Sequence record: KT919972.1
Reading direction: 5' to 3' (one strand)
DNA: 64,000 nt
Part shown: one piece after another, positions 4,175-19,625 of the stretch
Layout of the letters: every line of letters starts with the position of its first letter
Position numbering within the stretch: position 1 is the stretch's first letter
Notes under the pieces: generated by a model
Told to the model about the DNA's origin: nothing
Seen by the model: only the letters and a program-made list of their open reading frames with translations
The model's database searches: none
Translations under genes and position numbers: made by a program

Positions 4175-4753
4175 ATGAGTAGCACAAAAGGTAAAGTCAA
4201 CAAAGACGATTACTACGCTACGCCAGACTGGATTGTTGAAGAGTTTCTACTAGAGTTTGAAACTCGCATTCAGCATGAGCACGAGAAGAGCATGGCAGGT
4301 ATGGACGTGCTCGACCCATCATGTGGTGGTTGTTCAGAACACAAAGCAGCATATCCCGTAGCATACAAGAGTTTGTATCATGTTGATATTGACACAATGG
4401 ACATTCGCGAAGACAGTCACGCGCAAATTATCGCGAACTATCTTGAAGCTGATGTTCAAGTGAATTACTACGATATGATCATGACTAACCCACCGTTCAG
4501 CTTATCAGTTGATTTTGCAGAGAAAGCACTGAGCGAAGTCAAGAATGGTGGTTATGTTGTCATGCTACAACGTCTTAACTGGCTAGGTAGTATCAAACGA
4601 AAGCCTTTCTGGGATGAAGCACCCCTGAGAGCAGTGATGGTTCATCATCGAAGACCATCATTTCACGGTACAAAAGGCACAGACTCGATTGAGTATGCGC
4701 ACTTTGTATTTCAAAAAGGTTACGCAGGTAAAGCAGAGATTATAGTAATATGA
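4175..4753 (+). CDS. SAM-dependent amino (N6-adenine/N4-cytosine) DNA methyltransferase
   Basis: DDYYATP, VLDPSCG (motif I), MTNPPF (motif IV). Confidence 0.85.
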   Translation: MSSTKGKVNKDDYYATPDWIVEEFLLEFETRIQHEHEKSMAGMDVLDPSCGGCSEHKAAYPVAYKSLYHVDIDTMDIREDSHAQIIANYLEADVQVNYYDMIMTNPPFSLSVDFAEKALSEVKNGGYVVMLQRLNWLGSIKRKPFWDEAPLRAVMVHHRRPSFHGTKGTDSIEYAHFVFQKGYAGKAEIIVI

Positions 4754-4965
4754 TTACTTCAGTTGAAACTTATGAAGGTCTACTAGACACATTCGACAAA
4801 CCACAACAAATGAAAATCGTAGATGGTGATGTTCATTATTCACTATTCGGCACTCAGTTGTTTAGTCGCAAAAGCGAACTATTGCTAGAGACCTACTTGG
4901 TTTCAACTGAATCTACGCTCGGTGATGTTTACATGTGGAGAGTGGCATGTCGTTTACGAAAATGA
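4750..4965 (+). CDS. Hypothetical protein
   Basis: ATGA overlap with upstream gene; 71 aa. Confidence 0.65.
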   Translation: MITSVETYEGLLDTFDKPQQMKIVDGDVHYSLFGTQLFSRKSELLLETYLVSTESTLGDVYMWRVACRLRK

Positions 4966-4982
4966 GAAAAATAAGGGAATCT

Positions 4983-5339
4983 ATGTCCAATTTTAAAGCA
5001 AATCTAGCAAGTCGTAGTACGATTAAGATCAATGGTACTGAGTATCACGGTACAAGCGTGACAGTTAAGAACGGCAAAGTCGCTGTTGACGGTCGTTTGC
5101 AAGGTGATATTGATGACCGCGTGGTAAACGTGTACATTGATGGTGACTGTACTCTTGTTCAAAACGAGAACGGCAATATTGCATGTCGTAACGTACAAGG
5201 TGACGTGACAACGACTAATGGCGATATTGAATGTGACGATGTTGATGGTTCAGTATCATCAACAAACGGTGATATCAAATGTGGTGATGTTGCTGGTAAT
5301 GTAAGCACAAACAACGGGGATATTATTCGAAAATGGTAG
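4983..5339 (+). CDS. Beta-helix repeat protein (DUF4097-like)
   Basis: Repeated V.G.V.T.NGDI.C units; AAGGGA RBS. Confidence 0.7.
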   Translation: MSNFKANLASRSTIKINGTEYHGTSVTVKNGKVAVDGRLQGDIDDRVVNVYIDGDCTLVQNENGNIACRNVQGDVTTTNGDIECDDVDGSVSSTNGDIKCGDVAGNVSTNNGDIIRKW

Positions 5340-5605
5340 ATAAAACTCGAATCAAAGAAGTAATTGACCTCGCGATTGAAAAAATTGAAGCAGGTTCAAA
5401 TATTGCACACAGCGTGCAAGAGTTTACGCCGTTTGATGTTGTCAACTACTTACAAGAAATTGGCTACGAAGCTCATGATCTTGAGACAAACGGTTGGCAA
5501 GTAGACTTCTGGCAAGATTTCACCAAAGACGGCTGCAAGAAACTTACATTTGCAGGTAGCTGGTATTTCGGTCAATCAACACTGAGTGAGGCATGTGATG
5601 ACTAG
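5333..5605 (+). CDS. Hypothetical protein
   Basis: 90 aa, overlaps neighbours in operon fashion. Confidence 0.7.
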   Translation: MVDKTRIKEVIDLAIEKIEAGSNIAHSVQEFTPFDVVNYLQEIGYEAHDLETNGWQVDFWQDFTKDGCKKLTFAGSWYFGQSTLSEACDD

Positions 5606-5894
5606 ACAAACAGATTTTTTCGGTCGAGAAATTAAAGACGGTGACTTTGTATTGCGTGCAAAGAACTCAGGTCGTTCTTACTCAATGAGCGTACTGCTCG
5701 TTGTTGACTTGCCTGATGATCGTCGTAAATACCTAGAACTCAGACCTTACGGTGGTGTTAGCAACAATGCCAAATTACCTGTCGGTAGTTCAGCGACGGT
5801 TGTCGAACCTGAAATCGTAGAGCAAAAGTACCCAGATGCTTATCGCGCTGCGTTAGTAGAAGCTGCAAATCTTCGCACGGTAATCCCTCGATAG
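5598..5894 (+). CDS. Hypothetical protein (SH3/KOW-like start)
   Basis: TDFFGREIKDGDFV N-terminus. Confidence 0.7.
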   Translation: MTRQTDFFGREIKDGDFVLRAKNSGRSYSMSVLLVVDLPDDRRKYLELRPYGGVSNNAKLPVGSSATVVEPEIVEQKYPDAYRAALVEAANLRTVIPR

Positions 5895-5897
5895 TTG

Positions 5898-5925
5898 TTG
5901 ACGTGAGTTGTCAATTGTGTATAAT
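5898..5925 (+). promoter_or_regulatory. sigma70-type early promoter
   Basis: TTGACG-16-TATAAT. Confidence 0.65.
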
Positions 5926-5950
5926 GCTCTTAAATTGAAGGAGAACTACT

Positions 5951-6088
5951 ATGATTGACAACATGATACGCGACATGATTGAGTCTGAATATGAATTCGA
6001 TGACATCATTCATTGTCTTGAAAAGCAATACAAGATGCCTCATATAGAAGCAGTGGACGCTCTAAACGAGGTAATTAACGATATGTGA
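5951..6088 (+). CDS. Small acidic hypothetical protein (45 aa)
   Basis: GGAG RBS; MIDNMIRDMIESEYEF... Confidence 0.55.
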   Translation: MIDNMIRDMIESEYEFDDIIHCLEKQYKMPHIEAVDALNEVINDM

Positions 6089-6095
6089 GAAATAC

Positions 6096-8165
6096 ATGAT
6101 TATTCATACCCCTGAAAGTAAAGTCCAAACATCTGGTAAGATGCGAACGGCTGGCTTTAATATGAAAGCAAGTGCAAAAGGCTTTCGTATTATTTCGACT
6201 ACACTATACAAAGACCCTATTCTAGCTATTGTACGTGAATTGACATGTAACGGCTGGGATGCTCATCAAATGAACAAAAATATCGATAAAGCAATCGAAG
6301 TACACTTGCCGAATCAGTTTGAACCATGGTTTGCAGTGAAAGATTTCGGTTGTGGTATGAGCGATGACGAGATCTTTGGCGTGTACACGACTGTTTTTGA
6401 TTCGACGAAAGACGACTCGAACGACGTGATTGGTGCAATGGGTCTTGGTTCTAAGACACCGTTTAGCTATAACAACGGTCAATCGTTCACTGTTAAGTCA
6501 ACAAAGAACGGTCTTAAAGCGGTTTACTCTGCTTATCTTGATAATGGCGAACCTGCAATCACTTGTATGTCAGAGCCTGCACCAACTGATGAGCCTGATG
6601 GTGTTGAAGTAATCGTACCAGTACGTAAAGAAGACTTCAATCGCTTCAAAGAAGCTGCAAACAAAGTAATGCCGTACTTCAAAGCACCTGCTGTTGAGAC
6701 GAATATCACTCTTTCTGAGCGTAATTTCACTCATATGGACGGTTACTTCACTGAAAACAAGAAGAATTCATGGCGTTCTGGTGATGTTTACGCAGTAATG
6801 GGCAATGTTTGTTACCCACTAAGTGAATATCACATTCAAGATATTCATCTAGTTCGAAACTACTTCAAGAACTCTGATCTATACATTGAATTCCCGATTG
6901 GTGAACTCGATGTCAGTGCGTCTCGTGAAGAGCTTCACTATGATGACTATACGATTGACAATATCAATAAGCGTGTGAATGAAATCAATTCTAAGTTTCT
7001 AGCTGAAGCACAGAAATGGGTTGATGATCAAAACTTTGATTATATCGGTGATGCATATCGCGCTTGTGACAATCGTTTCAATGACGTTGTGCTGAAGAAG
7101 CTGAAGTTTAATGACGAGCTTGTGGCGACTTATGCAAGTCGTATGCTTAAAGATTTCCCGATTATGGGTAAAACTGTACGTATGCGACCTGAGTGCAGCA
7201 ATAAAGAAGGTGTTCAACGCAATACCCGTGCTGCGCGTCCGTACGACTTGGTCAACCCGCGTAATGATTACTCTAAAAAACCGATTACGGTCATTGTTGA
7301 CGATTTGAAGTCTGGTGGTGTTGCAATCACAAAAGAATATATTCGTCAAGAAAACGTGAGTATTTTCTATCATCATGACGATAAGCCGTCTACGACTGCA
7401 CCGTTGGCATTCTTCAAAGAACGTCTTCGTGATTGTGAGTATCGCGTGTTGAAAACGTCTGATTTGAAAGCGAATTACACGCCTCAGAAGAAGAGCGTCA
7501 AGAAAAAACCAGTGTCAGCTACAATTCGTTTGTATGAAATGCGAATTAATGAAGACGGCGAGCGTACAGTTAAAGCATCTGACGTTAAACGCGAAGTATT
7601 AAAGAGCGGTTCGTTTCATTACGTAAGTCTGTTCCGTGATTACATTGAGAAAGTACCAGAGTGTGGTCATGGTCTTGATTACCATCGTTCGTTGGGTATG
7701 ATCGAGACGATTATGCGTATTAAAGGCATTGATGTTGTTTACATCGCTCGACGTCCTGAGTACGTTCACATCAAAGGTAATGAAAATGCTGTAAATATCT
7801 TTGATATTAAGTTTAACAAGCGTGAATTGCGTAGTAAAATTGATTGGAAATCATACACAGTTGATAACAATCTGTACGGGTATCGCAGTGCGCTTGTGAT
7901 GACGTGGAATAATGATGCTGTTCGTAATCATTTCGGTTACGCTCGTTCTTATCACACGTGTAATCAGACGATTGATCGACTGTGCGACCACTTCTCTGCT
8001 ATTCGCGACGTTCGAACACAAGAGCAAGAAAAGCACTTAGAGAAGTTGAAAAAGATTCAAAATGAATCGAAATATGAATTGCTATTCAAACTTGTTGGTT
8101 CTAACACGTGTGAAGAATCAACTACAAAACTAATTAAACTCTTGAGAGGAAAACGCAATGGTTAA
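6096..8165 (+). CDS. rIIA: rIIA protein
   Basis: GHKL/HATPase N-domain (RELTCNGWDAH, DFGCGM, GAMGLGSKTPF), directly upstream of rIIB. Confidence 0.92.
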   Translation: MIIHTPESKVQTSGKMRTAGFNMKASAKGFRIISTTLYKDPILAIVRELTCNGWDAHQMNKNIDKAIEVHLPNQFEPWFAVKDFGCGMSDDEIFGVYTTVFDSTKDDSNDVIGAMGLGSKTPFSYNNGQSFTVKSTKNGLKAVYSAYLDNGEPAITCMSEPAPTDEPDGVEVIVPVRKEDFNRFKEAANKVMPYFKAPAVETNITLSERNFTHMDGYFTENKKNSWRSGDVYAVMGNVCYPLSEYHIQDIHLVRNYFKNSDLYIEFPIGELDVSASREELHYDDYTIDNINKRVNEINSKFLAEAQKWVDDQNFDYIGDAYRACDNRFNDVVLKKLKFNDELVATYASRMLKDFPIMGKTVRMRPECSNKEGVQRNTRAARPYDLVNPRNDYSKKPITVIVDDLKSGGVAITKEYIRQENVSIFYHHDDKPSTTAPLAFFKERLRDCEYRVLKTSDLKANYTPQKKSVKKKPVSATIRLYEMRINEDGERTVKASDVKREVLKSGSFHYVSLFRDYIEKVPECGHGLDYHRSLGMIETIMRIKGIDVVYIARRPEYVHIKGNENAVNIFDIKFNKRELRSKIDWKSYTVDNNLYGYRSALVMTWNNDAVRNHFGYARSYHTCNQTIDRLCDHFSAIRDVRTQEQEKHLEKLKKIQNESKYELLFKLVGSNTCEESTTKLIKLLRGKRNG

Positions 8166-9892: not shown

Positions 9893-10562
9893 GAAACATA
9901 TTCGAAAATACGATGAGCACGGGGTTGCTCAGTATAATATGCTGATGATATTCGGTTTGATGATAGTAATCGCTCTATCAATAGCACTTACTGCGGCAAA
10001 TATACTATTTTCATTCGAAATACAAAACCCTGACGCGAACATCACAACACCAGGTGATTCGTTCTGGACAGTATGGATGGCAATGAGTACAATCGGTTTT
10101 GGTGACAAGTACCCTGTCACTACGGGTGGTCGATATGTCATCGGATGTATGTTTGTTGTTGGTACATCGTTACTTGGTTTGACTATTGGTATTATCAACT
10201 CATGGGTTGTGTCTAAGTTTGATAAGAGCATTCAGAATCGCGTGTTGAAGAGTCAGAACGATGCATTATTGCACAAACTAGACCGCCTTGAGACGCATTT
10301 AGGCATCGAACAAGAAGTTCGATTTGATAAAGATGCACATGGTATAGATACAATAATTGACCAGTATTTTGACAGCAACGAGAAAGCCGATAGAATCGTC
10401 ACACTTGGTCAAGATGATAGCGGTCGATATGTCGTAGCAATAAATCAGCTAATGGTCGAAACGCAACATACATCAATGAAGTGGCATACTTTCATCAATG
10501 AAAAAGATGCTGTTAAATTCTTTGAAGAAACTAGTGAATTATTTCACACGGAGCTATTATGA
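9879..10562 (+). CDS. Two-TM potassium channel (KcsA-like) with C-terminal domain
   Basis: TM1, pore helix SFWTVWMAMS, filter TIGFGD, P.T..GR, TM2. Confidence 0.88.
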   Translation: MKRFKKHIRKYDEHGVAQYNMLMIFGLMIVIALSIALTAANILFSFEIQNPDANITTPGDSFWTVWMAMSTIGFGDKYPVTTGGRYVIGCMFVVGTSLLGLTIGIINSWVVSKFDKSIQNRVLKSQNDALLHKLDRLETHLGIEQEVRFDKDAHGIDTIIDQYFDSNEKADRIVTLGQDDSGRYVVAINQLMVETQHTSMKWHTFINEKDAVKFFEETSELFHTELL

Positions 10563-11053
10563 TTCGTAAAATTACACTCGTTGCACTAGCAACACTGGCA
10601 CTTGCCGCATGTGACAACAAACCTGCGACGCTTGATACTAACGCTTACTATGCTGAACAAGAAGATGAACAGCTACTAGTTGACGCACCAACCACTGAAA
10701 AGTTTGACGTGACGCTGCCTGTTGTTGAAGAACAACCGCAACAACCACAGACAGTCGTTGTACAGCAAGATGACGGGTTTGATTTAGGTGATGCAGCGAT
10801 TGGTTTTGTTGCTGCTGAGTTAATCGACGAAGTAGGTGATTCTTTTGAGTCGAAGAAGAAGACGCACGTTAAGCAAGTTGTAATCAAGCAGCCTGTAAAG
10901 AAAGCGCCTGTGATTAAACGTGTTGAACCTAAAAAGGTAGAAGCGAAGAAGGTAACAAAGACTGTAGTCAAGAAAGAAAAGAAAAAGGAAAGCTTTTTCA
11001 AGCGAGCAGTCAAAAAAGTGAAAAAATCGAAGTTTAAAAAACGTCGCAGATAA
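10559..11053 (+). CDS. Putative lipoprotein with Lys-rich tail
   Basis: Lipobox LALAA/C at residue 18; acidic middle, strongly basic C-terminus. Confidence 0.7.
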   Translation: MIRKITLVALATLALAACDNKPATLDTNAYYAEQEDEQLLVDAPTTEKFDVTLPVVEEQPQQPQTVVVQQDDGFDLGDAAIGFVAAELIDEVGDSFESKKKTHVKQVVIKQPVKKAPVIKRVEPKKVEAKKVTKTVVKKEKKKESFFKRAVKKVKKSKFKKRRR

Positions 11054-11082
11054 AAAAAAGGGAGCAATTAGCTCCCTTTTTT
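11052..11082. terminator. Bidirectional intrinsic terminator
   Basis: A8-GGGAGC-AATTA-GCTCCC-T6; reverse complement of the 850-878 terminator. Confidence 0.9.
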
Positions 11083-11089
11083 GTTATTT

Positions 11090-11641
11090 TTACTTCTTAG
11101 CGGCTTTTTTAGCACGTTTAGTAGCCTTTTCAATCTTTATCAGCTCTGCTTCCATCTTCTCAAGACCTTGAAGATATTGATCAGATTGCTTGATGTCGCT
11201 ACGAAATACGCCTTTCGCTGTTGCAATATCAATGTCACTGTTGAGACTTGTGCGAAGCTTACGAACTAAGAACAACGAACGCTCTAAGTCTTTTTCAAAT
11301 GCTGCTACTTTCTTCTCAGTGATATCGTCTTGTTTCAGTGAGCGATACTTCTCGATTTTCTTCATAGTCTTTTTGAGTTCGCTGTAGTCTTTGCGTGCTT
11401 GACCGCCTGCAAATAACGCACCACCAATGAGACCATGAATACCGAGACTAATTGCACCCCATGTTGCAAGTGGTACAGCGACTGCCAACCCACCTGTTGC
11501 TGTCGCACCCGCTGCTGCGGTCATAAAGCCAAATGCAGCACCGAGAGATGCACCAGCTAATGCAGAACGACCAGCCCATTGCTTTATTGTAGCTTCTTTA
11601 AGCTCTGTTTCTTTATATTCATCAAATGTTTTAAGTTCCAT
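11090..11641 (-). CDS. Candidate capsid-internal protein with Gly/Ala-rich hydrophobic hairpin
   Basis: N-terminus MELKTFDEYKETELKE resembles the T4 capsid-targeting sequence; one of only two credible minus-strand genes. Confidence 0.7.
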   Translation of the reverse strand: MELKTFDEYKETELKEATIKQWAGRSALAGASLGAAFGFMTAAAGATATGGLAVAVPLATWGAISLGIHGLIGGALFAGGQARKDYSELKKTMKKIEKYRSLKQDDITEKKVAAFEKDLERSLFLVRKLRTSLNSDIDIATAKGVFRSDIKQSDQYLQGLEKMEAELIKIEKATKRAKKAAKK

Positions 11642-11671
11642 CACGGTATTCCTTTGTTGTCAGTAATAAAA

Positions 11672-11745
11672 AACGAGGGAAGCGACTATAGTTGGAACCA
11701 ATACTCGCAGTGACCAATGCGATACATAGTCACGACCCTCGAAAC
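11672..11745 (-). ncRNA. Candidate structured leader/small RNA ending in a U6 run
   Basis: Nested stems CGAGGG/CCCTCG, GACTAT/ATAGTC, TCGCA/TGCGA, TTGG/CCAA. Confidence 0.45.
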
Positions 11746-11828
11746 TGAATAAAATATTGTGTATGATATATTTAGTGCTACAACACTACTTGATTTACAA
11801 TTTTCTCATAAAAAAGACAAAATAATTG

Positions 11829-11857
11829 TTGACTAAAGTGTAAAAAATGCTTATCAT
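11829..11857 (+). promoter_or_regulatory. sigma70-type early promoter
   Basis: TTGACT-17-TATCAT. Confidence 0.7.
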
Positions 11858-11909
11858 AAGGCATATTCTGATTAAACGTTCAATAATCCAACAAAAAGAG
11901 ATTTATATT

Positions 11910-12374
11910 ATGACACCAAAAGACATTCTACGCGCTGCGAACACTACTGTTTCTAAGCTGAGTATTTTAAATGGCGAGTACAGCACAGTTGTTCTAGGCT
12001 CACCTGCAAGTGGTAAAAACACTATGCTATTGGGTATGATGATGCAACGTGGCATCGACAACTGTACAATGATCGTTACAGAAACACATCACGCTAATAT
12101 GGCTAATAAAATTGGTGTTGGTGCATTGGTTGTATGTGGTGGACTGAATCTTGAAAAACTCATTGAGGCAGTTTCATTTGCATGTACTCAAGATCGTGAA
12201 CATATCTTCATCGAGCACGTGCAGCCTATGTTAGGTCACGACATCGTTGAAATTCTAGAGTCAATCGTGAAACCATTCAACAAGCGCATCTACATCGGTA
12301 TTCAAGCTGCACGCAGTAGCGGTCTAGGTGATAACTATAAAACACAAATGATGAATACATTGACACTGGGGTAA
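11910..12374 (+). CDS. Small P-loop-like protein
   Basis: VVLGSPASGKN (Walker A-like); start re-chosen at 11910. Confidence 0.6.
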   Translation: MTPKDILRAANTTVSKLSILNGEYSTVVLGSPASGKNTMLLGMMMQRGIDNCTMIVTETHHANMANKIGVGALVVCGGLNLEKLIEAVSFACTQDREHIFIEHVQPMLGHDIVEILESIVKPFNKRIYIGIQAARSSGLGDNYKTQMMNTLTLG

Positions 12375-12376
12375 TT

Positions 12377-12652
12377 ATGAACTTCTTTCAAATAAGCATG
12401 AATTTAGCTATTGACCCATCAATTGAACCAGACGAAGAGTGGGCTGATAAGCAATTGATCATTGCTTCTAGTCACGAAATGGCTAGAAAACTTGCTGATG
12501 CACGCAAGAAAGGTCGTCATGGTTGGTTCGACCCTAATGTGTGCTCTATCGACTATCTCTATGAGTTGCGCGATAAAGCACTTGAAGATAATGATCACGT
12601 GAGTGTAATGAACTACACCGCAATGATCGCTATGCGGGAGAGTGTACAATGA
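12377..12652 (+). CDS. Hypothetical protein, possibly all-alpha NTP-pyrophosphatase-like
   Basis: KLADARKKGRHGW..C..L..DHVSVMNYTAM pattern seen in small phage proteins; fold call is tentative. Confidence 0.55.
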   Translation: MNFFQISMNLAIDPSIEPDEEWADKQLIIASSHEMARKLADARKKGRHGWFDPNVCSIDYLYELRDKALEDNDHVSVMNYTAMIAMRESVQ

Positions 12653-13662
12653 ATGTACTATTCACGAGTCTATTCGGCTCGAAACTCTATGGCACAGACA
12701 CGCCAGAGTCAGATACAGACTACAAAGCTGTCTTTCAACCTGAAATACGTAAACTGTTGCGCGGTGTTGCAATAAAGAACTCAGTACACACGACTGGCAA
12801 ATCGTTTGAGAAGAACGGTGCAGACGATGAAGACTTTGAATATATACCAGTTCAAGTGTTCATGCGTGACTTTCTTGCAGGTCAGTCGTATGCAATTGAA
12901 TTGGCATTTAATGCACTACAGAACCCAGATGACTGCAACCCTGCATTCTCTGCTATGTGTCGTGAGTTAACAAGTACGTATTTGACATCAAACGTTAAAG
13001 CAATGACTGGTTACGCGCTCAATCAAGCACAGAAGTACGGCATCAAAGGTACGCGACTAAACAGCCTTATGCAATTCGCCCGTGCTGTAGAGACGCACAA
13101 CGTCGATTCTAAAGCGAAGTTGGGTTCAAGCCCTGAGTTGTGCAAACAACTATGGGAACTGTGTGCAGAAGACGCTCACGTGCGTTTTCAGTGGTATCAT
13201 GGGCCTAAAACTAAAGACGCGAGCGATTTGAAAGACCCTGCATTCAGTGTGCTTGAGAAAGTATTCGGTCTTGAGATAACGTTTGAAGAAGCTGCGGGTC
13301 GTCTTGAGAAGATGATGAGCAAATATGGTGCTCGTGCATATCAAGCGCGTGCTGCAAGTGGTTCAGATTGGAAAGCGATATCACATGCCATGCGTGTGAT
13401 CGATCAAGCAATCGATATACTAACAGTAGGTAAGTTGGAATTCCCTTTGAAGAACGCAGCGTTCTATCGTGACGTGAAACAAGGTAAGTACAAGTGGGAA
13501 TATGTGTCTGAAGTGCTGCAAGAACGTCTTGAAGTGCTAGAAAATGCAAAAGATACAACGTCACTTCCGAATCACACACCTGAATTGGTTAATGATTTCT
13601 ACGAGTGGTATGATGACTGGCTTGACGAATTCTACTTCCCTTCAGTATATAGTTACAATTGA
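12649..13662 (+). CDS. Pol-beta superfamily nucleotidyltransferase (T4 NrdC.11-like)
   Basis: GSKLYGTDTPESDTD (GS-x-DxD); DWKAISHAMR. Confidence 0.85.
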   Translation: MNVLFTSLFGSKLYGTDTPESDTDYKAVFQPEIRKLLRGVAIKNSVHTTGKSFEKNGADDEDFEYIPVQVFMRDFLAGQSYAIELAFNALQNPDDCNPAFSAMCRELTSTYLTSNVKAMTGYALNQAQKYGIKGTRLNSLMQFARAVETHNVDSKAKLGSSPELCKQLWELCAEDAHVRFQWYHGPKTKDASDLKDPAFSVLEKVFGLEITFEEAAGRLEKMMSKYGARAYQARAASGSDWKAISHAMRVIDQAIDILTVGKLEFPLKNAAFYRDVKQGKYKWEYVSEVLQERLEVLENAKDTTSLPNHTPELVNDFYEWYDDWLDEFYFPSVYSYN

Positions 13663-18014: not shown

Positions 18015-18530
18015 ATGAAAGTTATATTCTTGGACATAGACGGCGTTCTAAACAACGCTTTAGAAGTCGATGAGCACATGGACGTGCTATTGAATGGCGA
18101 GTATCAAGGGATTTATTCGCCTCGATGTGTCGACCGTTTAAATGATCTCATTAAAAGAACTGACGCACGCATTGTGCTTACAAGTGTGTGGCGGTGTGGT
18201 CTTAGTATCGATGAGATCAATACAGTGCTTAATGATATGGGTGTTAATGGTGAATGTATCGGCAAGACAGATATGCTCGACCATCAATACTCATGGGCTT
18301 TTCGTGGTAATGAGATTCTTAAATGGATTCAAGACAACGAAGAGTTGCTTGGTAAGCGATACGACTTTCGAAGCTATGTCATCTTAGATGATGACACTGA
18401 TATGTTGTTATGGCAACGTCATAACTATGTAAACTGCGACCCAGAGATCGGCTTAACTGATCGTGTAGTCGCAAAAGCCGTGGCAATACTTAATAACGCA
18501 ATTTGTTCTGATGCAGGTCAAGAGTTTTAA
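18015..18530 (+). CDS. HAD-family protein (RNA-repair 'Swiss army knife'-type HAD domain)
   Basis: KVIFLDIDGVLN, IVLTSVWR, RG.EI..W, YVILDDD. Confidence 0.85.
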   Translation: MKVIFLDIDGVLNNALEVDEHMDVLLNGEYQGIYSPRCVDRLNDLIKRTDARIVLTSVWRCGLSIDEINTVLNDMGVNGECIGKTDMLDHQYSWAFRGNEILKWIQDNEELLGKRYDFRSYVILDDDTDMLLWQRHNYVNCDPEIGLTDRVVAKAVAILNNAICSDAGQEF

Positions 18531-18535
18531 AGTGG

Positions 18536-18564
18536 TTGACACAAACAACAATAGATGTAATAAT
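18536..18564 (+). promoter_or_regulatory. Probable early promoter for natV
   Basis: TTGACA-17-AATAAT. Confidence 0.55.
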
Positions 18565-18599
18565 CTAATCTCAATCAATGACAAAATGGGGAGCCCAAT

Positions 18600-19625
18600 A
18601 TGTCACACGCAATCTTTATCGGACGCTTTCGTCCATTCCACAACGGTCATCTATCTGCAATCACTCAAGCATTCGACGCGCTTGATCTAGACAAGATGAC
18701 TATCTTAATCGGTAGCTCTAATCGACATCGTTCAGTTAAAAACCCTTTCACGTTCGAAGAAGTACGCGATATGATGGGTGTTGCTTTACCTGACGATATT
18801 CGAAGCAAAGTTCGCTTTGTACCACTAGGTGATTACGCGAAAGACGACGTTTGGCAGTCAAATGTTCGTGCTAGTACGAAAGGCGCCACTCACATCGTTG
18901 GTTACGACAAAGACGAAAGCAGCTACTATCTCAAGCTATTCCCTGAGCTAAAACTATTTCAACCTGAACCAGTGAAGATGTATAACAGAGTTATCTCTGC
19001 AACTGACTTCAGAGAACTGTACTTCAGCGAGATTCTACTGAATCACCCTGTTATGTCTGGTCTGATTCCCAAGCAAACAATGATGTTTCTTGACGATTGG
19101 AGCAAAACAGAGCATTTCACTGAAATGAAAGCTGAATACGATAGCTCAGTGCGCGAAATCGAGAAGTTTCTCGACTACCCTTACCAAGGTCACTTGAATA
19201 TCGCGTGTGCTGACAGCGTTGTGATGTGTGCAGGTCATGTTCTTCTTGTCGAGCGTAAGTTCAACCCAGGCAAAGGCTGTTTAGCATTACCTGGCGGTCA
19301 TAAGCATGAGAAAGAAACATTCTTAACTGCTGCGATTCGTGAACTACAAGAAGAAACTAACATCAAAGTCCCAGAGAAAGTCTTGCGTGGCTCGCTCAAA
19401 GATGAGAAGATGTTCGATAACCCAAATCGCTCTTACCCACACACTCGCATCACAATGGCATATCACTTCAAAGTGCAGCCAAACCCTGACAACACTTTCC
19501 CGAAAGTGAAGCCAGCCGATGATGCTGTATCAGCGAAATGGTACTCACTGAGTGAAGTAATGGACATGCAAGAACGTTTGTATGACGATCACTACCAAAT
19601 CATTCAGTATTTCACTGGCATCTAA
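18600..19625 (+). CDS. natV: Bifunctional NMN adenylyltransferase / Nudix ADP-ribose hydrolase (NadM-Nudix)
   Basis: FIGRFRPFHNGH, SATDFR; Nudix box GG..E..AAIRELQEET; DDA..A.W..DH. Confidence 0.93.
   Translation: MSHAIFIGRFRPFHNGHLSAITQAFDALDLDKMTILIGSSNRHRSVKNPFTFEEVRDMMGVALPDDIRSKVRFVPLGDYAKDDVWQSNVRASTKGATHIVGYDKDESSYYLKLFPELKLFQPEPVKMYNRVISATDFRELYFSEILLNHPVMSGLIPKQTMMFLDDWSKTEHFTEMKAEYDSSVREIEKFLDYPYQGHLNIACADSVVMCAGHVLLVERKFNPGKGCLALPGGHKHEKETFLTAAIRELQEETNIKVPEKVLRGSLKDEKMFDNPNRSYPHTRITMAYHFKVQPNPDNTFPKVKPADDAVSAKWYSLSEVMDMQERLYDDHYQIIQYFTGI

Follow-up and report, generated by a model that had tools for sequence, protein, structure and literature searches.

Comparison of phage genomes identifies a real, conserved and unannotated family of structured RNA that is confined to KVP40-like vibriophages. 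We consider it somewhat better than an even bet (a probability of about 0.55) that the element is a discrete late small RNA of ~75–100 nt with a second role as a leader, which probably represses translation in trans; in all likelihood it belongs among the regulatory small RNAs of phages as a new one, and is more than a leader alone.

Fold and distribution of the RNA element

Positions 11000–12400 of the window (the whole stretch of 64,000 nucleotides that was analyzed) match Vibrio phage phi-Grn1 (Schizotequatrovirus valkk3) with 100% identity and ten sister records with 98.9–99.6% identity. The phage is of the T4 type and belongs to the KVP40 group. Whole-genome analyses were run on the public phi-Grn1 record, KT919972.1 (248.6 kb). 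The RNA element lies within a 265-bp divergent intergenic region. Downstream of it is a gene of the family phrog_14713 (11090–11641, or to 11644 as listed; minus strand; 183–184 amino acids). On the plus strand, a divergent sigma-70-type early promoter, TTGACT-17-TATCAT (11829–11857), forms a block that is kept in all lineages and stands before genes for a P-loop protein (start at 11910), a small protein and an NrdC.11-like nucleotidyltransferase.

The structured core is a 68-nt domain on the minus strand (11674–11741), described by our covariance model R1. It is closed by P1, a helix of 6 bp, five of them G-C, between CGAGGG (11741–11736) and CCCUCG (11679–11674), and is followed directly by a U6 tract (11668–11673) that can be read from the sequence. 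The 101-nt stretch has a minimum free energy of –29.2 kcal/mol, compared with –17.6 ± 3.3 kcal/mol for dinucleotide shuffles (z = –3.57), and none of 200 shuffles was as good. A first-pass annotation, made from the sequence alone, had described a branched, structured leader at this site. The folding energies bear out the structured RNA, and all of the strings that were quoted (P1, strands X and Z, the inner hairpin, U6 and the promoter-like ACTAAATA) lie on the minus strand where they had been placed.

Within P1, two folds compete. In the rod fold, strand X, GUGACUAUG (11725–11733), pairs with UAUAGUCGC (11690–11682) to form the 9-bp helix X/Z, which is followed by an inner 5-bp hairpin, UCGCA (11722–11718) with UGCGA (11709–11705), whose 8-nt loop is UUGGUCAC (11710–11717); this hairpin was also found by a scan. 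In the other fold, the first 7 nt of strand X pair instead with 11710–11716, and GUGACUA/UGGUCAC, GCGA/UCGC and P1 make up a three-way junction with joining strands of merely 1–2 nt. The two folds are mutually exclusive, lie 0.1–2 kcal/mol apart in every lineage and both retain P1. The alternative GUGAC/GUCAC pairing, which had been suggested as a disruption of the inner stems, is thus real and conserved. A third hairpin in the same annotation, UUGG-UU-CCAA, must be given up: its loop would have just 2 nt, and VS2, nt-1, K566 and F86 have no CCAA arm.

Covariation supports both folds. In a model-guided alignment of six sequence types, to which the inner hairpin of 5 bp contributes 4 pairs, 99.1% of the cells of the rod fold are paired, and six pairs are altered on both sides, as against 1.8 ± 1.0 in column shuffles. 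Pairing fell to 26–52% in all of the register-shifted controls. Compensation is found in 4 of the 6 pairs of P1 among the six types, and in 5 of 6 when 1.081.O (UGAGAG/CUUUCA) is included. Both strand-X helices are 100% paired in six lineages with one compensated pair each, the alternative pairing becoming GUGACCG/CGGUCAC in K566. The closing pair of the inner hairpin changes from A-U to U-A in F86, and the version in 1.081.O consists of a stem of 4 bp and a loop of 10 nt. For the three-way junction, 99.0% of cells are paired and five pairs, including those in P1, are compensated.

Model R1 scores 93.6 bits on the minus strand and 27.1 bits on the plus strand. Together with the presence of G-U pairs, this asymmetry identifies the RNA as a minus-strand transcript and led us to reject an element that acts at the DNA level, such as an origin or a binding site.

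The element is present once per genome and only in large Vibrio Straboviridae, where it falls into seven sequence types: the ValKK3 group, which includes the window (type 1), the KVP40 group (type 2), VS1/VS2/QD01 (type 3), K566/D48x (type 4), F86 (type 5), nt-1/CZ01 (Mylasvirus; type 6) and 1.081.O (type 7), which was detected at the syntenic position through the covariance model. In VS2, the core is 91.5% identical, compared with 75.6% for the protein-coding flanks. The 21-mer GGUCACUGCGAGUAUUGGUUC (11695–11715) is unchanged in the window, KVP40, VS2 and K566, and carries a single change each in F86 and nt-1. The flanks in K566 have only 67% identity, yet the 21-mer is invariant. Overlapping it is the candidate seed, AGUAUUGGUUCC (11694–11705), which is unpaired in both folds and has a mean unpaired probability of 0.5–0.7.

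Among viral contigs, the invariant-core pattern was found only in KVP40 and VH7D. Metagenome contigs gave 22 matches to the core pattern, all of which are coding coincidences (for example, G-H-S-E-Y-W or the GGDEF-type V-T-A-S-I-G), and a gapped version of the pattern gave 80 loci, none of which fits the covariance model. As the 18-base RNA core also occurs by chance inside unrelated coding genes of metagenome contigs, exact-pattern matches beyond vibriophages should not be read as homologs.

Searches for a known RNA class at the site were negative. With cmscan at E up to 10 across 11000–12500, Rfam gave no match overlapping 11660–11780, in agreement with the earlier statement that no riboswitch or ribozyme could be recognized by eye. 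ARAGORN recognized no tRNA gene anywhere in the window and no tRNA or tmRNA at the site, and the 28 tRNAs of phi-Grn1 form a separate cluster away from the element. A link to preQ1 or 7-deazaguanine was dropped for want of a preQ1 match in Rfam and of a UGU motif in the loop. We also considered a small protein, as a 13-codon ORF begins within the stem of the window copy. However, VS2 and F86 do not share the frame in which the window copy reads the invariant 21-mer, and an AUG is absent from K566. Since the reading frame is not conserved, the constraint does not act on a peptide.

Predicted transcript ends and the downstream gene

The motif that would drive transcription of the element is ACTAAATA (11769–11776, minus strand), a variant of the gp55-type late box TATAAATA. 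Its CTAAATA is invariant upstream of the element in all seven lineages, amid otherwise variable sequence, and occurs only once in the 64-kb window, at the RNA element. The initial description of this motif as late-promoter-like was a reasonable guess, given its conservation and the fact that NCTAAATA precedes late genes in phi-Grn1. There it lies 15–53 nt upstream of the genes for the tail tube, the straight tail fiber and the prohead protease inhibitor, and its place before late structural genes argues that phi-Grn1 uses NCTAAATA as a variant late promoter. We enumerated NNTAAATA 8-mers throughout the phi-Grn1 genome, counting sites no more than 90 nt upstream of a co-oriented ORF start. Such positions were occupied by 10 of 14 copies of TATAAATA, 9 of 15 copies of TCTAAATA and 4 of 9 copies of ACTAAATA. 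We infer that ACTAAATA acts as a late promoter at the RNA element.

Some features of the late promoters of phi-Grn1 may be recorded here. The canonical T4 late box, TATAAATA, is present in just 14 copies in the 248.6 kb of the genome; NCTAAATA often takes its place (for example, at 84418–84424 and 107938–107944); and TCTAAATA is found upstream of the tail tube, the straight tail fiber and further late genes.

With T4-like spacing, transcription would start near 11762–11763, ~6 nt past the motif, giving an RNA of ~95 nt with a putative 5′ leader at 11742–11763 (minus strand), of which CAGUUU is kept in five lineages. This leader is predicted to measure between 0 and ~21 nt. It would be missing in nt-1/CZ01 and 1.081.O, where a distance of 4–5 nt between motif and P1 puts the predicted start at P1 itself.

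The 3′ end would be set by P1 and the U tract. A U-rich tract follows P1 in six of the seven lineages, and 1.081.O has a separate canonical terminator instead. Like an intrinsic terminator, the element has a GC-rich stem, P1, directly before U6, which we take to be the terminator tail. As a terminator, however, P1/U6 would be atypical. The stem encloses a 56-nt branched or bulged interior with invariant loops, and it was missed by a simple terminator scan. Moreover, there is no co-oriented upstream gene to terminate, and P1 of 1.081.O lacks the U tract and is followed by the separate terminator.

How is the RNA related to the gene that follows it? The product of phrog_14713 combines hydrophobic segments rich in Gly and Ala with a charged tail that forms a coiled coil, and belongs to a PHROG without an assigned function; these features lend no support to the first-pass label of a candidate injected protein. 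The distance from U6 to its start codon in the window is 23–26 nt, and 26 nt for the AUG at 11641, which had been placed about 30 nt past the element. Across the five lineages with the gene, 15–26 nt separate the U tract from the start codon. As this gap leaves no space for a promoter of its own, phrog_14713 must be transcribed solely through the element, and in that sense the element is its leader.

The element nevertheless persists where this gene has been lost. In VS1/VS2/QD01, phrog_14713 is absent and the element is kept with every pair intact, followed by U5, a bidirectional terminator and a converging gene. In 1.081.O, both phrog_14713 and its neighbor are absent, and TCTAAATA, the domain closed by P1 and a canonical hairpin-U5 terminator form what looks like a compact stand-alone RNA gene. 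The RNA thus has its own predicted promoter and a 3′ end without a downstream gene in both groups. Our main argument is that, because the element is kept where phrog_14713 is lost, the RNA itself is the selected product. The first-pass annotation had left the choice between a discrete late RNA and an attenuator open, and these lineages favor the first of the two.

The second, that the element is purely an attenuator acting in cis, is unlikely, though it is the strongest of the alternatives. According to this proposal, two folds would set the passage of polymerase through P1/U6 into phrog_14713 under the control of a protein, a ligand or folding kinetics, and the short product would have no function. 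It would account for the element being the only possible 5′ UTR of phrog_14713 in five lineages, for the U tract after P1 and for the conservation of two exclusive, nearly isoenergetic folds. However, an attenuator would be expected to form its terminator stem in only one of its two exclusive folds. Since P1 is kept in both, and neither fold is an obvious antiterminator, there is no clear terminator/antiterminator logic. Nor would it explain why the element is retained, with its pairs intact, in VS1/VS2/QD01 and 1.081.O. A kinetic version has no need of a 21-nt invariant stretch that is largely single stranded, and a ligand-dependent version finds no riboswitch family among the Rfam matches.

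An improbable alternative is that the element is a structural 5′ cap, a stable stem that shields the late mRNA from 5′-end-dependent decay and carries no regulatory information. The GC-rich stems and the coincidence of the predicted start with the first base of P1 in nt-1/CZ01 and 1.081.O would fit, but the proposal does not explain why unpaired nucleotides are invariant, why there is a U tract and a conserved alternative fold, or why the element persists without a downstream gene.

The RNA is syntenic with the P-loop/NrdC.11-like operon in every lineage, including those without the downstream gene. It could therefore be a protein-binding or decoy RNA tied to this divergent operon (P-loop, small and NrdC.11/RlaP-type proteins), for example as a mimic of a tRNA anticodon arm, although we regard this as more doubtful still. 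NrdC.11 has been placed in the RlaP family, which adds 1–2 nucleotides to damaged RNA 3′ ends and has been assayed on tRNA-Asp (bioRxiv 10.64898/2025.12.29.696909). The 5-bp stem of the inner hairpin carries a loop ending in GUCAC, and the loop of the phage tRNA-Asp is CUGUCAC. However, the window protein matches Pfam RlaP below threshold (E = 0.0035), a 5-nt loop match to 1 of 28 phage tRNAs is within chance, and the position equivalent to 33 is G, not U. The 4-bp stem and 10-nt loop of the 1.081.O hairpin do not fit such a mimic, and the operon lies on the opposite strand with an early promoter.

A ligand-binding riboswitch, with the three-way junction as its aptamer, is very improbable: the compact junction, invariant unpaired nucleotides and two folds are what one might expect, but Rfam gave no match at the site with E values of up to 10, the joining strands of the junction measure only 1–2 nt, and the downstream gene gives no metabolic clue and is outlasted by the element.

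A candidate target at phrog_15749

If the element is a discrete small RNA, what might it act upon? When the conserved unpaired parts of the RNA were compared with the phi-Grn1 genome for complementarity, we found that one gene, phiGrn1_0030 (phrog_15749; 18192–18767 of the phi-Grn1 record, outside the window), carries two sites. Its product of 191 amino acids combines a membrane anchor at the N terminus with a coiled coil. The gene has a TATAAATA and a terminator of its own and lies directly after the distal tail-fiber gene and before asiA, a slot that holds genes 38 and t on the T4 map. Pfam and PHROGs gave nothing on the function of the protein, and blastp found no homology between the phrog_14713 and phrog_15749 products (E = 0.32).

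Site 1, GGAACCAAUACU, occupies positions –12 to –1 relative to the AUG and forms 12 Watson-Crick pairs with AGUAUUGGUUCC. Site 2, CAGUGACCAA, spans the stop codon and forms 10 pairs with UUGGUCACUG (11708–11717), which consists of the hairpin loop and two stem bases. In phi-Grn1, when the seed is compared with start regions, phrog_15749 ranks first of 351 (–19.4 kcal/mol, z = –4.8), and when the hairpin loop is compared with 3′ ends, the phrog_15749 mRNA is again first of 351. With their own seed variants, nt-1 and F86 also place the start of the phrog_15749 ortholog first (of 362 at –19.7 kcal/mol and of 294 at –15.3 kcal/mol, respectively). In nt-1, the seed GGUCCUAC and the site GUAGGACC form 13 of 14 possible pairs. 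Across six lineages, the duplex of seed and site comprises 11–13 bp at the Shine-Dalgarno-to-AUG region, with energies of –15.7 to –20.1 kcal/mol, and a 29-nt query of four genomes returned phrog_15749 as the best ortholog group.

The target site is identical at 17 of 18 positions between phi-Grn1 and F86, the proteins of which are 51% identical; of 153 ortholog pairs, only 10 retain at least 17 of 18 upstream bases. In K566 and F86, where the position of the stop codon has shifted, the motif GUGACCAA stays in the 3′ UTR. We also noted that ACAUAGGAACCAAUACU, the stretch of 17 nt that leads up to the phrog_15749 AUG (phi-Grn1 18768–18790), is the same in five lineages, with proteins that are 51–88% identical.

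As a control for chance, shuffled seeds attain –19.4 kcal/mol in 0.7% of trials, which favors the pairing. Several results temper the assignment. Genomic 18-mers of the same GC content attain this energy in 6.3% of trials, with self-antisense cases counted in. Since seed and site may simply be inherited through shared ancestry, the three top ranks should not be counted as independent events. In 1.081.O, the seed lacks GUA, pairing with phrog_15749 is reduced to 7 bp (–8.0 kcal/mol, rank 89 of 330) and the 3′ site ranks 73 of 330. Moreover, with the full 29-mer as query, the start region of nrdA scores equally in phi-Grn1 and nt-1, so the target assignment is not unique. From these comparisons, we give roughly even odds that the pairing with phrog_15749 is a genuine target contact.

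The nrdA gene (phi-Grn1 4386–6611) may be considered a secondary candidate. Its start region AUGCUUGUAGUGA and the invariant RNA segment UCACUGCGAGUAU can form 13 pairs, three of them G-U. The nrdA site is constrained by coding, and its changes in F86 and 1.081.O are uncompensated.

The reading that we prefer, a late small RNA that is also a leader, can be put together as follows. Late in infection, host RNA polymerase that carries the late sigma factor of the phage (gp55 type) would initiate at NCTAAATA and copy the 68-nt domain closed by P1. Some polymerases would stop at the U tract past P1, releasing a free RNA of ~75–100 nt, and the remainder would read through to produce, where the gene is present, the mRNA of the downstream membrane-type protein. 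The free RNA would expose the invariant, single-stranded AGUAUUGGUUCC, which could pair with the Shine-Dalgarno-to-AUG region of phrog_15749, and its hairpin loop could do likewise with site 2, at the 3′ end of that message. Translation of phrog_15749 would then probably be repressed or timed.

A broader version of this scheme is possible, and we offer it tentatively. A lytic T4-type phage may use a late, two-state, trans-acting small RNA in which one invariant region represses several phage mRNAs, namely those of the membrane-anchored protein in the slot of holin t, thereby affecting lysis timing, and of the early gene nrdA, as a RegA-like late shut-off. If so, it would be the first regulatory small RNA with a defined target in Straboviridae.

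Relation to known RNAs and neighboring features

Base-pairing small RNAs can arise by premature termination in a 5′ UTR, as do the riboswitch-derived SreA and SreB of Listeria. Like these, the vibriophage element combines a promoter, a structured leader, a terminator-like end and a gene reached by read-through with a conserved unpaired stretch whose complement lies in the ribosome-binding region of a distant mRNA. Unlike SreA and SreB, it has no recognizable ligand-binding family, belongs to a strictly lytic T4-type phage, has a predicted late (gp55-type) promoter and a phage late gene as its candidate target, and is a stand-alone gene in two lineages.

T4-type phages are the best-studied lytic phages, and their post-transcriptional control is almost wholly protein based (RegA, RegB, gp32 and gp43). 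According to a 2010 review, T4 had by then yielded neither a riboswitch nor a trans-acting small RNA with a characterized function (PMC3014915). Short phage-encoded RNAs that pair with mRNAs are known elsewhere, and the vibriophage RNA would resemble them in this respect: VpdS of vibriophage VP882, which acts in Vibrio and binds Hfq, PreS of lambda, 24B_1 and AgvB are covered by a 2025 review of phage small RNAs (PMC12197685). Of the examples named there, VpdS, PreS and 24B_1 come from temperate phages or prophages, whereas the vibriophage RNA comes from a lytic phage; a search of the review for the terms "phage T4," "lytic phage" and "virulent phage" gave no occurrence (PMC12197685). We detected no similarity in sequence or structure between the vibriophage RNA and the known small RNAs in Rfam.

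T4 RNAs C and D (species 1 and 2), which are encoded in the tRNA region, are likewise small non-coding RNAs of a T4-type phage. The vibriophage RNA differs from them in lying outside the tRNA cluster and in having a predicted late promoter, a terminator-type end and a candidate target.

On these comparisons, the element most likely represents a new RNA family, absent from Rfam, among the base-pairing or leader-derived small RNAs of phages. Its interest lies in the fact that regulatory small RNAs are uncharacterized in T4-type phages, as far as the 2010 review and the term search of the 2025 review show (PMC3014915; PMC12197685), and it offers a concrete RNA-target pair that can be tested. If confirmed, the pair would add RNA-based regulation to the late development of large vibriophages that are considered for aquaculture, and would provide a function-linked handle on two membrane proteins, the products of phrog_14713 and phrog_15749.

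Finally, we note several features of the surrounding DNA. The early operon occupies 11910–13662 (plus strand) in the window and encodes the P-loop protein, which has a GSPASGK motif, a 91-amino-acid protein and the NrdC.11-like nucleotidyltransferase. PDB sequence searches with two neighbor proteins were uninformative. There is no annotation at the RNA site in any record, save for two short ORFs that look like spurious gene calls: the K566/D482 records have a short "hypothetical protein" ORF laid across the element (1259–1381 in the coordinates of the examined locus), and the F86 record has one just upstream of it (1333–1425). On the far side of phrog_14713, a strong bidirectional intrinsic terminator (11054–11082), with a 12-bp stem and A6 and T6 flanks, separates the converging genes at 10559–11053 (plus strand) and 11090–11641 (minus strand), and it is to this terminator that all of the weak Rfam small RNA matches of the region are drawn.
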